Shown here: positions 33,421-63,308 of the stretch, one piece after another
How positions within the stretch are numbered: position 1 is the first letter of the stretch
Layout of the letters: each line of letters starts with the position of its first letter
NCBI GenBank assembly: GCA_964199315.1
Contig: OZ116706.1
Span: forward strand, 8,990,001-9,054,000
Direction of reading: 5' to 3'
DNA length: 64,000 nt
Source of the DNA: Orbicella franksi
Taxonomy: Eukaryota
Translations under genes and position numbers: made by a program
Notes under the pieces: model-generated
What the model saw: the letters and a program-made list of their open reading frames with translations, nothing else
Database searches by the model: none
What the model was told of the DNA's origin: nothing

Positions 33421-33704
33421 TTATTTGAACGTTATTAGATAATCTGGATAGCATTGATTATCATAGAACACAACGAAAATGCTTGGATTCGCGGGGTTAT
33501 CCACGACAGTGTCGTAAGCATCTGTGGCGTCACTTCCCTTGGGAGGTGGGGTTATCATTCCCTGGCGTCCAGTCGTGTACTCACCAACAAGGACACGTGC
33601 AAGATACATGTGACGGTTTCCGGCTCCACCTGGTGGTGAATACTTGGTCTGTGTAGAATAAGAAGCATCTCGAGCAAAATAAACGCCATTTCCAAACATA
33701 GTGG
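33421..33704 (-). CDS. PARP14-like exon 13, ART C-terminal half
   Basis: ATMFGNGVYFARDASYS...NPSIFVVFYDNQCYPDYLITFK*. Confidence 0.92.
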
Positions 33705-36700
33705 CTAAAAGCAGTAAAAGCAGAACTAGTCAGTGGATTAAAAATTTAAACTTAGGGTTAGGGTTATTGGGCTTCACGAGCATGTTACGTAAGAATGGTA
33801 TGACACTAAAAATATGAAAAGAAAAACTAAATAGTTCTTCACGCATGACAACAAACTGTAAAGTTGAAAAATCATAGTAAACCAACAGTCACTCCTTAGG
33901 CCGCAGCCGAATTTACTTGTAGCGACGGGAAACTAGAGTATTTATGGGGTGATAAGAAGAGGGCGTTTCTAACGGGGTGACACCTGAAGTGCGTTTCATG
34001 ACATGCTTTTGCTTTCTATTACAAAGTGGAGTGGTGAATCACCACACTATTTACTTAAACTTTCAAATACGTTTGCCTTATACATGCATGGTCACATCTA
34101 AGTATGACAGCGAAAATTTAAAAGGATCCTTATAGTTCATCCTTGATATACACATCAGACAAATTCTCTGTGTATCACACCTACATATACACTACGATTA
34201 AAAATACTTAGCAATTAACGACATCTTCTTTGGGCTCACGTTTCAAGGAAGTGTTCTGACGAGTGGATTTTGTTTTGCTGGACTAGAAATAATAATTTGT
34301 ATTTGCTAGGTAAAGAATTTCGCTTAGATTAGTTATTAAATTGTAATCAACTTGACTTACGGTGTAGACTCGTCCATCTAACGTTGAGAAACAAAAATGG
34401 CTAATTTTACAAGTTCGCGTAAATTTGGAGAATTCCAGTTGGAACTTACCATTCTTCCCACAATAGCTTCTGTTGAAACCAGTCTTGTTGATGCTAGCAC
34501 AGCTTCCTTCAGCTGTACCATGGAAAAGTGTTCGTTCATTGCTTCCTTTCTTCTCTTCCATTTGGTCCTTTTTTACCATATATACACGGTACAGGGCAGG
34601 GTTTTGTATTCTCTGAATCTTAGTGATGGTGATAGGGGAGGTCTTGTGAACTTCATCAGCTACCTTTTTGTACTCGTTTGCGTGGATGACAGGATCCAAT
34701 GGCACTAGATGAACCTCCTCCTCTTTGCCGAAGCTATCTTTTGGATGCACGTCCCATTCGTTTGGTAAAGGAATACCTGTTTAAAGTAATTATTTGGGAA
34801 ATCATTGTCTACATATAGAGGCTTACAAGCTATACCAACTTAAAGTCACGCGCCTCGAAAACTGTAAGACCTTCGTTACTTTCGGAATTTTACGATAGCT
34901 ATGTCACGATAAGCTGTCTTTGAGGCACTGCAAAACAGAAAAGCAGTCTGTTCATAATGGGCACACAGTAACGGTACGATAAAAACCAAAAAAACAACAA
35001 CAACAAAAAAGAAAAAAGAAACGAAAAAATGATATGACATGAGCAAAATGTCCTTATACAATATAACACACATGTAATATATAATGTAGTAAAAATAAAT
35101 TGAATAAAAAGTATTTTAAAAGAATAGTTTCACATGCTAGTGAATACGATATGTTTCTTTTCAAAACATTGGAATTAGTACTTATTGAGTACTTAACCAC
35201 ATGAGCCGTTTTAAGGTCAATATTTCTCTTTCTCTTTTTATGTATAGTACAGGCTCCCCAATTTCTATTAAAATAGTTACTTCTTATACCATGAAGTATA
35301 AGTACGATAAAATATCAGCTAGTTTTTGAAATAAACGTTACCTTTTCCAAACTCTTTTCGGACGACAACTCTTTCCTCGCCATCTTCGAAACAGGTTTCT
35401 TTCATGTCCTTGAAGACTACCTCACATCTGACATCTTCAATTACGACCATCACGGAATCGTGGCCATCGTTAAACGCGTTTTCTATCTGTAAATTAATGC
35501 TGGTGTCATAAGGTTCCCAACTGCCATCATCGTCACGAAAGAACCACTGGATGTTCTTGGCGAGAAGTTCTTCAACCCCTCGTGTGTAATCTTCCTCTAG
35601 TTGCTGGTTGAGGATCTCGTGAATCGTGGTGGCCACATCTAATACGCCTTCTACATCACCTCGTATGCTAATGCGGCCTATTGCCTCTTCAATGGTCACT
35701 GAGACATCGTGCTCTGCTTGCAAATCCCTTATTTTCCGCTTCTGCTGCTTGGAGAGCTTGCTAATCGCATCATGCTCTATCACTTTCTGTTTGCAGTGAT
35801 CAGCTACATCCTTCTCGATGTCTTTGATGACTTTATCGATATCTTGCTTAGTCCCTGCAAAGATCTCCAAGTAGCTGTCGCCTTTTGCGCTCAACATTTT
35901 CCTTGATGCTATGGCATGCGATGTTGCCAAGCCAATTTTTCCTAATCCAAACCAGCCAGCAATCTTGGATATGACGCCTGGTTCGCCCTCTTCCGACGAA
36001 CGAATGCATGCCTCCATTGCACTTCGGAACACCTTTAACATGTGCGGCTCATAGATTACAATTCGAATAGAGCTAATTGATTTTGGCTGCTCTTGAGCAA
36101 ACTTGGAAAATGCCAGCAACATCCCTTCAGCAGCTTCTTTCACGTCTTTTCCGATGTTACCAGTTCCAACAGCTGGGAAAGATACCGAAGTCAGTCCACT
36201 GGAGTCAGCTTTCCGTAGACAAGTAACGATGCAATCTTTGATAGACCGCATGGACGACATTGTGTCCGGAACCATGTGGTAAATGTTTCTTACATTTAAT
36301 TTTCCTGCTCCAGTAACTGCAACAGAACCTGATGATTGGAAACCTAGGGATAAGCATTCTTGCTGAATTGTTGGTCCTCCAGCATTTAGAATTGCCGTTC
36401 CAACGCCGCCGCCTACTGCTAACTTGTCGTTGGACAAAATCGCAATTGCATCGGTAACCTCTTTGGTAATGTCACCAGTTTCAACTTGAACAGTGATGGC
36501 GCCCATTGTGATTTCAGGCTTTATGTGATCTAATTCTTCATCCACTATCTCAAAAGCGTCTAAGTCGTCTGGATCAGAACTTTTGATGGTCACCCCAGGC
36601 GATCTGCCACGCTTCTTTTTTTCACTTCCAGCTGCTGCTGAAGGCGGTAGCCCGGGTTGACTTCCCTTCCTTGTTTGAAGTTCAGCCTGAAACGCTTTTA

Positions 36701-62039: not shown

Positions 62040-62081
<42 letters not shown>

Positions 62082-63308
62082 ACTGACAAATGTGACTAAA
62101 CGACGACTAAACACCCGGCCAAGTCTGTAGACTTAACATTTTACAGAAATCAGGGATATAGTATTATACATCCGTATAATACTCTTATTAATCTTTGTTT
62201 TTCTCTTTCTCGTCTATATTTTCGTACACATTTTGCTTCACTGCCTTGTAACTCTCGGCTACTTCCTTTGTAATGTTTCATACTATGCGTATTTGAGGTA
62301 TAGGTTAGAAATTCTTGTTTCCACAGATCTCCATACCTCAGTTTCTGACCCAAGCTCTGATATAGACCAAAAAGGCGGTCTTCAATGGACAGCTTACCCA
62401 GATGTCTTAAAAGCAAACCAGCCCCCGGGTCAAATAATGTGGAAAAGGTACGAAGATAGTCTTCCTGGATTTGAAGGCTGTGGCACAGTTGTCGTGACTT
62501 TCACTTTCTACGATGGTGTACAGAGTTCGGAGCACCCAAGCCCCGGTGAAATGTACAAAGGAATGTCTTGCATTGCGTACCTCCCTGACACACAGGAAGG
62601 CAAGCAGATTTTAAAGTCATTACGGAAAGCTTTTGACGCTCGCCTGGTGTTCACTGTTTCAAGGTCTGCTTCAGATCCACCAGCCCAAGTCGCACTAAAT
62701 GGCGTCGAACTGAAGACATCAGCAGAAAGTAATGCAAGGTAAGCAGCTTCATAGATAACATTTCGTAAGAGTTTTGTGGTAAAGTCCTATAGCCTCTTGA
62801 TGTCGGCAAAACTCCACCTAAACAATAGGTCAAAAAGCGGTTTTTACTATAGTGTTATCAAATGATTTGAAGAAAATGTTAACTCATCAGAATTTGAATG
62901 AATGCACAGTTACTAAAAGATTCAGGAAGTCGCCTTTTACGATTACGAAAAAACTTTAAGGAGATGGGATGGGGTTGTCATCACCCTGTAAATACGCGGA
63001 AAAACCACCTCGCAATTAATTAAGTTATATATTGTGATTACTTTACTATTACGTATTACATACGGGCTAGTCCTCATGACAATACTAGGGGGGGAGTGTA
63101 AATAAGGCCTTTAACTTCATTATTTTGCGAGTCGTATAAACTTTGTCGTCGTGTTTCTTCGAATGGGTTTGAGATATATAATGTACTTTACAAGTTAGTT
63201 TTGAGACTCATGCAAACTTCACTCTTTGAATATTGCAGAAACGGCTACCCAGACCATGGATATTTGTCAAGAGTAAGAAAGCAACTAGCTGCTAAAGGAT
63301 TTCAATAA
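54566..63308 (+). CDS. DTX3L: DTX3L-like Deltex E3 ligase, 6 coding exons, about 1299 aa: RRM, KH-like, disordered linker, macrodomain, linker, RING-HC, DTC
   Basis: Exons 54566-54758, 57248-57333, 58180-61081, 61679-61915, 62327-62738, 63239-63308. Sum is 3900 nt, all GT-AG and phase compatible. RING CALC..CVQHKFCDDC..CPVC; DTC NQPPG..LPG..EHPSPG..AYLPD..EG..GYPD. Confidence 0.85.
57248..57333 (+). CDS. DTX3L-like exon 2 (not in the ORF track)
   Basis: VAESVLDRRHEIDGALVTLERHQSLHTDQ completes the RRM; cag/gt borders. Confidence 0.8.
57501..57790. mobile_element. MITE with ~35-bp TIRs
   Basis: GGGACTCTCATATAGAAAGTACGGGAGTGCTCGTCG ... CGACGAACACCCCCGTCCTTTTTATATGGGAGTCTC. Confidence 0.7.
58180..61081 (+). 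CDS. DTX3L-like exon 3: KH-like domain, low-complexity linkers, divergent macrodomain (~59290-59845)
   Basis: GITVLLQIGDITSSDVDVLLSPAN...TSCGNLPCRGVLHTVLP...SVALPPLG...INDIRIV is a macro fold signature. Confidence 0.85.
61679..61915 (+). CDS. DTX3L-like exon 4, C3HC4 RING
   Basis: CALC-x13-CVQHKFCDDC-x10-CPVC. Confidence 0.88.
62041..62081. repeat. (TTG)n microsatellite
   Basis: Direct reading. Confidence 0.9.
62327..62738 (+). CDS. DTX3L-like exon 5, Deltex C-terminal (DTC) domain
   Basis: NQPPGQIMW...LPGFEGCGT...EHPSPGEMY...AYLPDTQEGKQIL..LRKAFDARLVFT. Confidence 0.9.
63239..63308 (+). CDS. DTX3L-like exon 6, DTC end (not in the ORF track)
   Basis: (R)NGYPDHGYLSRVRKQLAAKGFQ*; the phase-2 junction matches exon 5. 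Confidence 0.88.

Follow-up and report, generated by a model that had tools for sequence, protein, structure and literature searches.

In humans, the macro-PARP gene PARP9 and the Deltex gene DTX3L lie head-to-head on a shared bidirectional promoter that responds to interferon-gamma (PMC4070648), and PARP14 and PARP15 are neighbours of the pair. PARP14 is regarded as the ancestral macroPARP and is present in corals, PARP9 is a later partial duplicate of it, and activity has been demonstrated for the first macrodomain (Macro1) of PARP14 from the coral Stylophora pistillata (PMC10221186). DTX3L is ancient in Metazoa and bears a macrodomain in its pre-tetrapod orthologues, which was lost when PARP9 appeared; the linkage of DTX3L with PARP9 arose after lungfish, and zebrafish DTX3L sits at a separate locus (Picard et al. 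2026, preprint, 10.64898/2026.04.23.720386). A coral transcriptome study counts DTX3L among viral-defence genes (PMC13455614). We analysed a stretch of 64,000 nucleotides from the stony coral Orbicella franksi (assembly GCA_964199315.1, contig OZ116706.1, positions 8,990,001 to 9,054,000; hereafter the window), in which a PARP14-like gene and a Deltex gene stand head-to-head. A literature search found no description of a cnidarian PARP14/Deltex head-to-head pair, of its promoter, or of a Deltex orthogroup with a degenerate DTC domain.

The locus resembles the human PARP9-DTX3L pair in that a macro-PARP and a RING-DTC Deltex diverge from a short spacer with STAT/IRF-type boxes, and in that the Deltex carries an N-terminal PARP14-type RRM. 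It differs in that the coral partner is a full-length PARP14 type with a histidine-tyrosine-isoleucine (H-Y-I) catalytic triad, compared with the shortened Q-Y-T PARP9, and in that the coral Deltex has its own Macro1-type macrodomain and is without a detectable KH-like D2/D3 region and without the H/Y/E residues of human DTX3L. Common descent of the two layouts is contradicted by published fish synteny. The original prediction for this stretch, an invertebrate version of the PARP9-DTX3L module with an intact transferase, was confirmed as an observation and partly supported as an interpretation. PARP14 as the ancestral macroPARP, PARP9 as its partial copy (a derivation that the prediction had also proposed) and a macrodomain-bearing ancestral DTX3L are already published.

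The divergent gene pair and its spacer in stony corals

The PARP14-like gene on the minus strand and the Deltex gene on the plus strand are arranged divergently, with 517 bp between their start codons (Table 1), as expected from the predicted pair of a triple-macrodomain ART gene and a Deltex gene across a spacer of ~0.5 kb. RNA contigs from three libraries were mapped over 53000-58900; the raw-read run X24 contributed 8 reads only, so the mapping is without strand or transcription-start-site resolution. Spliced contigs of both genes were present in the three libraries. The Deltex junctions 54758/57248 and 57333/58180 were confirmed by these contigs, and at the first PARP14-like junction the loose RNA end at 53886 continued into exon 2. 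The 5' ends of the contigs lay at ~54099-54130 for the PARP14-like gene and at ~54476-54521 for the Deltex gene, ~350 bp apart, and in one library (X1) a single contig covered the entire spacer. These results show that the stony-coral PARP14-like/Deltex pair is expressed and divergently transcribed.

Relatives were sampled from ENA and Tara contigs with exon-level calls of open reading frames (ORFs) that contain an orthologue of the big Deltex exon, whose identity to the window was 33-46%. The results showed that in these contigs a minus-strand PARP14-type RRM exon faces the Deltex gene, and the divergent layout was present in 6/6 coral lineages sampled (the window, L001, L004, L002/L003/L005, L006 and L007), which bears out the predicted pairing in related genomes within stony corals. 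L001, L004, L002/L003 and L006 have the head-to-head layout; L007 has a minus-strand RRM upstream of the Deltex macrodomain and DTC exons, with Deltex exon 1 uncalled. A walk outward from L002 (L005) reached a KH+Macro exon beyond a further six RRM exons, matching the structure of the window gene. The distance between start codons, 517 bp in the window, was 522, 529 and 498 bp in the three other lineages in which it was measured, and the Deltex open frame was intact in all lineages sampled. In an orthogroup tree, all of these lineages were placed within the group to which Montipora and Oculina belong; the pair is therefore documented only within stony corals. Given its presence in 6/6 lineages, the layout is not due to chance.

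The spacer was aligned across the four genomes in which it had been measured, with 100 shuffles as a control. The alignment contained 112 invariant columns (shuffled mean, 35; maximum, 53) and was mostly unalignable except for sharp conserved blocks. The blocks form one cluster near the PARP14-like start codon and a second adjoining the Deltex 5' end (Table 1), and the conserved boxes adjoin the 5' ends of both transcripts. In the first cluster, TTCCGCA precedes a box of the IRF type GAAA(A)CTGAAAG, followed by a gamma-activated site (GAS), a kB-like string and a string resembling a cAMP response element (CRE). At the kB-like position L002 reads GGAAAGTCCC, the Ig-kappa kB site in reverse complement; at the CRE-like position the conserved block is TGATGTCAC. 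The strict patterns of the interferon-stimulated response element (ISRE; GAAANNGAAAS) and of kB (GGGRNWYYCC) had no match in the window spacer, and the orthologous loci fit both patterns better than the window does. Because the strict patterns do not all match the window, the promoter case rests on conservation and not on consensus. Taken in this way, the conserved boxes support the spacer as a putative compact bidirectional promoter of immune type.

The two genes could instead be mere neighbours on a CpG-poor bidirectional promoter of housekeeping type, without immune regulation and with functionally uncoupled proteins. In favour of such an arrangement, many bidirectional pairs exist in animal genomes, chance often yields GAS-like TTCNNNGAA strings, and the window spacer leaves the strict ISRE and kB patterns unmatched. 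However, all six lineages keep the pair, and the four that were measured keep the spacer length, despite the divergence of the big-exon proteins; the conserved blocks fall on IRF, GAS, kB and CRE-like strings and not on arbitrary sequence; and each of the two proteins is part of the ADP-ribose signalling toolkit. We therefore consider mere adjacency very unlikely.

Table 1. Features of the PARP14-like/Deltex locus (positions within the window; strand "." where none applies)
Feature	Positions	Strand	Basis
PARP14-like gene, coding span; 13 exons, ~2138 amino acids; start ATG 54048, stop codon 33421-33423	33421..54048	-	Pfam matches; splice-site and phase analysis giving a single open frame
PARP14-like exons	54048-53886, 50824-50712, 50144-49994, 48633-48382, 46516-46265, 45825-45556, 45098-44862, 42116-41880, 40955-38648, 38246-38000, 36917-35342, 34776-34450, 33704-33421	-	
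Seven PARP14-type RRM-like repeats on eight exons	41880..54048	-	RRM_PARP14_3 and RRM_PARP14_1 matches on every exon frame
Macrodomain 1 of PARP14-like protein	38944..39315	-	Pfam Macro 105.5 bits; loop motifs NAANSNLHHVGGV and ISTGVYDFP retained
Macrodomain 2 (exons 10-11) and macrodomain 3 (exon 11)	36126..38209	-	Pfam Macro 51.2 and 96.7 bits
WWE domain	35358..35549	-	Pfam WWE 46.9 bits
ART (PARP catalytic) domain, two exons	33424..34776	-	Pfam PARP; triad H (LFHGT), Y (GVYFA), I (PSIFVVF)
Candidate bidirectional promoter: spacer separating the start codons	54049..54565	.	ATG positions
Conserved motif cluster	54102..54188	.	four-genome alignment
TTCCGCAC block	54102-54109		four-genome alignment
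IRF-like GAAAACTGAAAG	54114-54125		four-genome alignment
GAS TTCCGAGAA	54147-54155		four-genome alignment
kB-like GGGAAAGTCC	54162-54171		four-genome alignment
CRE-like, window reads TGATGTGAC	54180-54188		four-genome alignment
Second cluster, adjoining Deltex 5' end	54417..54447	.	
GAS TTCCGGGAA	54417-54425		
GAS string TTCTAAGAA	54439-54447		
Macro-Deltex gene, coding span; 6 exons, all GT..AG, 1299 amino acids	54566..63308	+	tblastn with Oculina protein P0014; splice sites; RNA contigs
Deltex exons (stop codon 63306-63308)	54566-54758, 57248-57333, 58180-61081, 61679-61915, 62327-62738, 63239-63308	+	
RRM (exons 1-2) and second RRM-like alpha/beta domain (start of exon 3)	54566..58400	+	Pfam RRM_PARP14_3/NID
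Macro1-type macrodomain of Deltex, in 2.9-kb exon	59284..59859	+	Pfam Macro 53.6 bits; AlphaFold2 and Foldseek macro fold
C3HC4 RING finger	61679..61915	+	Pfam zf-RING_2 27.9 bits
DTC domain (exons 5-6)	62327..63308	+	Pfam DTC 105.9 bits; PDB and multi-species alignments

Domain architecture of the two proteins

By its sequence, the minus-strand gene is a full-length PARP14 orthologue, predicted to be a mono-ADP-ribose writer whose Macro1 carries hydrolase motifs. The domain hallmarks of PARP14 are present: PARP14-type RRMs and KH domains, three tandem macrodomains before the ART domain, and a WWE domain followed by an H-Y-[L/I] ART. A phase-1 intron splits each RRM. The exon of 791 amino acids combines KH_PARP14 matches with a macrodomain; KH_PARP14_6 scored 31.9 bits, above its Pfam cut-off, while KH_PARP14_2, KH_PARP14_3 and KH_PARP14_8 fell below theirs, the last of these preceding the WWE domain. 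The Macro match of 51.2 bits in Table 1 corresponds to the N-terminal half of macrodomain 2, the rest of which lies in the next exon, and at the start of this macrodomain the exon 9/10 junction is ambiguous from sequence (38648/38246 versus 38662/38221). Macro1 retains the loop residues needed for hydrolase activity by published criteria (PMC10221186). The best PDB matches of the ART domain were PARP14 (64.6 and 94.7 bits) and PARP15 (54.5 and 108.4 bits); the LFHGT, GVYFA and PSIFVVF segments align to both, with the triad isoleucine opposite the leucine of PARP15 KLFVVF. The claim of an intact, full-length H-Y-I transferase of PARP14 type held. The window gene shares the three tandem macrodomains, the ART domain and the Macro1 hydrolase loop residues with PARP14 of S. 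pistillata (PMC10221186), and differs in having seven RRM-like repeats, one of them recently duplicated; a genomic partner and promoter are undescribed in that work.

A tandem duplication of 2117 bp with 94% identity was found by repeat search at 46176-48592 (minus strand) within the PARP14-like gene. It doubles one in-frame RRM exon, giving the pair 48633-48382 and 46516-46265 with near-identical translations. A second repeat pair, of 300 nt, lies at 47630-47929 and 48880-49179.

Among named proteins, those nearest to the window are from Oculina patagonica, Desmophyllum pertusum and Montipora. From the N-terminus, the Deltex protein consists of an RRM, an RRM-like domain, ~300 residues predicted as disordered by AlphaFold2, the Macro1-type macrodomain, a further ~400 disordered residues, the RING finger and the DTC domain. 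The first RRM matched Pfam RRM_PARP14_3 (38.3 bits), and an hhalign comparison with vertebrate DTX3L N-termini gave 80% probability (E=1.4e-5) with the RRM alone aligning; by this comparison, the N-terminal RRMs of the coral Deltex and of vertebrate DTX3L are homologous. The second domain, in an AlphaFold2 model of an orthologous N-terminus (mean predicted local distance difference test score, 81.5), was most like tandem-RRM proteins by Foldseek. The macrodomain had its best PDB sequence matches in PARP14 macro1 (59.9 bits) and PARP9 macro1 (54.4 bits). Pfam (E<=1), hhalign against vertebrate DTX3L N-termini, and AlphaFold2 with Foldseek of exon 3 and the N-terminus all detected no KH domain in this protein. 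Of the RRM/KH-RING-DTC architecture proposed originally, the RRM, RING and DTC therefore stand and the KH does not, and a macrodomain is present. Because no KH-like D3 domain was found, the KH-mediated interface suggested with it cannot be inferred.

The order RRM, macrodomain, RING and DTC is shared with the DTX3L orthologues that bear a macrodomain in metazoans other than tetrapods (Picard et al. 2026). We found this architecture in nine other phyla or classes, including sponge, molluscs, crinoid, hemichordate, amphioxus, Ciona and octocoral, and the N-terminal 150 residues of the Deltex protein align best to macro-RING-DTC proteins of other metazoans.

The two genes also share a 5' exon pattern, in which an RRM half ending in phase 1 is followed by a short exon (86 nt in the Deltex gene, 113 nt in the PARP14-like gene) ending in phase 0; the sites are 54758/57248 and 53886/50824, respectively. 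The pattern is an ancient gene structure that links the N-termini of macro-Deltex and PARP14. An origin of the Deltex 5' exons by recent inverted duplication was considered and rejected: the Deltex N-terminus scored 63-65 bits against the macro-Deltexes of amphioxus and Montipora, compared with at most 49 bits against the RRMs of its neighbour. Because those macro-Deltexes score above the neighbour's RRMs, the N-terminal homology between the two proteins is old.

Within Deltex intron 1, the summed RNA contig depth rose to ~7300 over 55955-56742, compared with ~25-40 at the exons. The segment contains internal 108-nt direct and inverted repeats and has no copy elsewhere in the window or in the coral loci, and scans of this intron and of the spacer for Rfam families and tRNAs gave no match. 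It is probably a multi-copy transcribed repeat.

The DTC domain, Deltex phylogeny and a model for the pair

Residues H707, Y719 and E733 of DTX3L are required for the ubiquitylation of ADP-ribose (Picard et al. 2026, 10.64898/2026.04.23.720386, preprint). Matched by spacing, the equivalent positions of the window Deltex hold E, N (or a gap) and Q: LNGVELKT stands in place of WNDIHHKT, the Y that precedes GYPD is an N, and EEL is replaced by KQL. Oculina, Montipora foliosa and five more coral loci (L001, L002, L004, L006 and L007) carried the same replacements, giving the orthogroup consensus (L/I/V)ELKT, (N/D)G(Y/Q)PD and QL. In contrast, WNDIHHKT, (F/Y)GYPD and EEL were retained in vertebrate DTX3L, in DTX3 and in every other macro-Deltex examined, including sponge, mollusc, echinoderm, hemichordate, amphioxus, Ciona and octocoral proteins and the other coral paralogues. 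Since the change is common to Oculina, M. foliosa and the five further loci, it is old and has been maintained, and since the replacement residues (ELKT, N-GYPD and QL) are themselves conserved, selection for the altered state is indicated. With the equivalents of H707, Y719 and E733 replaced in the window and in all coral orthologues, the Deltex itself most likely does not ubiquitylate ADP-ribose, contrary to the activity first assigned to the pair.

We also considered whether the Deltex gene is in decay, a relic that is turning into a pseudogene. The three altered DTC residues, the changes in both macrodomain loops (described below), the ~700 of 1299 residues with predicted disorder and poor conservation, and a very long branch could each be signs of decay. 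However, the frame is open in all lineages sampled and the transcripts are spliced; across coral lineages, identity is 55-73% for the RING, the DTC core and the N-terminal domains; and the substituted DTC residues are held constant, so we judge decay to be extremely improbable.

As for the placement of the gene, the best match of its DTC domain among solved structures was DTX3L (94 bits), far above DTX2 (70 bits) and DTX1 (57 bits). An exhaustive homologue search returned 2278 relatives, of which the best 150 include DTX3 and both fish and tetrapod DTX3L; DTX1/2/4 were absent among the ten named clusters of these 150, and the best 120 of a separate search were DTX3L only. In RING-DTC trees, which were unrooted and without a DTX1/2/4 outgroup, the coral Deltex orthogroup was monophyletic (100/100) on a stem of ~2.8 changes per site within a polytomy. 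The approximately unbiased (AU) test rejected a clade with DTX3 (p=0.01), did not reject a clade with vertebrate DTX3L (p=0.18), and fitted a clade with the other coral macro-Deltex paralogues as well as the free tree (p=0.50). The proposed resemblance to DTX3L is upheld by the DTC score and the homologous RRM, and a grouping with DTX3 alone is rejected; the unrooted trees do not establish DTX3L orthology. DTX3 and DTX1/2/4 share the RING-DTC core, and DTX3 differs further in being without an N-terminal domain. On these sequence comparisons, we place the Deltex in the DTX3/DTX3L branch as a derived paralogue found here only in stony corals.

Further coral macro-Deltex paralogues with a canonical DTC were P0027, P0030, P0041 and P0079 of Montipora capricornis and P0031 of Porites evermanni. 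Their branches were far shorter than that of the paired orthogroup, and a fusion to B-box/TRIM-like or filamin modules is seen in some. One 72.8-Mb Montipora chromosome carries four of these paralogues, which may form a cluster.

These placements bear on whether the head-to-head macro-PARP/Deltex layout is, as first proposed, ancestral to metazoans, with vertebrate PARP9-DTX3L descending from it and PARP9 taking the PARP14 slot. Two shared protein families in the same divergent orientation, across a similarly short spacer with STAT/IRF-type boxes, would fit such descent, as would the interferon-gamma-responsive bidirectional promoter of the human pair (PMC4070648), the origin of PARP9 as a partial duplicate of PARP14 (PMC10221186), the macro-Deltexes with PARP14-type RRMs from sponges to amphioxus, and the AU test, which leaves the clade with vertebrate DTX3L standing. 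However, the pairing is verified in stony corals only, and the paired Deltex belongs to a derived long-branch orthogroup with a degenerate DTC, whereas the other coral paralogues are short-branched with a canonical, bilaterian-like DTC. Human PARP14 lies downstream of DTX3L and not head-to-head with it, which also counts against an ancestral layout. The post-lungfish origin of the DTX3L-PARP9 linkage and the separate locus of zebrafish DTX3L (Picard et al. 2026) argue against continuity of the head-to-head layout from cnidarians through to tetrapods. We hold an ancestral layout to be unlikely and lean towards a separate, lineage-specific origin in corals.

The reading that we favour, and consider rather probable, is that a PARP14 writer/eraser and a macro-Deltex RING E3 ubiquitin ligase are co-induced from the immune-type bidirectional promoter, whether the layout is lineage-specific or inherited. 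The IRF, STAT/GAS and NF-kB-like boxes of the spacer would act as a shared promoter through which the two genes are induced together; mono-ADP-ribose would be put on targets by the PARP14-like enzyme; and the Deltex would work as a RING E3 on proteins at the sites so marked, recruited through its own macrodomain or RRMs and not through a PARP9-like partner. We infer immune induction from the conserved boxes, and activity loss from residue loss. By analogy, the coral pair could be a functional counterpart of the vertebrate PARP9/DTX3L-PARP14 axis, of which it may or may not be a homologue.

Several points weigh against this reading. The RNA depths in the three libraries indicate transcription of both genes and nothing about induction or co-expression. 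The spacer motifs are short consensus matches, and in the window the IRF box has a 3-nt instead of a 2-nt spacer and the kB box misses the strict consensus. Both catalytic ADP-ribose loops of the Deltex macrodomain are altered (SPANPTLSYREGV and PPLGQDGNCIPL), and because of this its binding of ADP-ribose is uncertain. Searches with Pfam, hhalign and AlphaFold2 found no interaction domain in the Deltex comparable to D3 of DTX3L, which serves oligomerisation and PARP9 binding. Finally, the E3 activity of the Deltex and its lost ADP-ribose ubiquitylation are both predicted from residues.

A bolder proposal is that a pre-interferon, bidirectional IRF/STAT/NF-kB cassette coupling a PARP14 writer/eraser to a macro-Deltex predates the cnidarian-bilaterian split and is ancestral to PARP9-DTX3L, and that in stony corals the Deltex changed from an enzyme that ubiquitylates ADP-ribose to one with a catalytically rewired DTC, serving as a reader or adaptor or having a new acceptor; we regard this as quite doubtful. 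If the boxes function, the way in which a classic interferon-stimulated gene pair is regulated would exist in animals without interferons, and the 0.5-kb promoter would provide a compact test of how cnidarian antiviral or antibacterial signalling reaches ADP-ribosylation genes. The coral Deltex would serve as a natural separation-of-function variant, in which the RING and the DTC fold are kept while the three residues for ADP-ribose ubiquitylation have been replaced and then conserved, and it can reveal a role of the DTC apart from that reaction. The pair also allows ancestral and convergent linkage of macro-PARP and Deltex genes to be tested, which bears on the published model of DTX3L macrodomain loss when PARP9 arose.

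Other features of the window

Elsewhere in the window, a plus-strand ORF of 276 amino acids at 21328-22155 matched RVT_1 and lies between assembly gaps at 20165-20364 and 28370-28530; it is probably a retroelement fragment. Two long plus-strand ORFs, at 16213-17886 (558 amino acids) and 29323-30318 (332 amino acids), had no Pfam match. Arrays of similar ORFs with motifs such as FRAFR..P.LRFRC..LKL, likewise without a Pfam match, occupy 1-1343 on the plus strand and 3997-6489 on the minus strand. The two arrays are in opposite orientation with ~2.6 kb between them and look like an inverted pair of tandem-repeat blocks.

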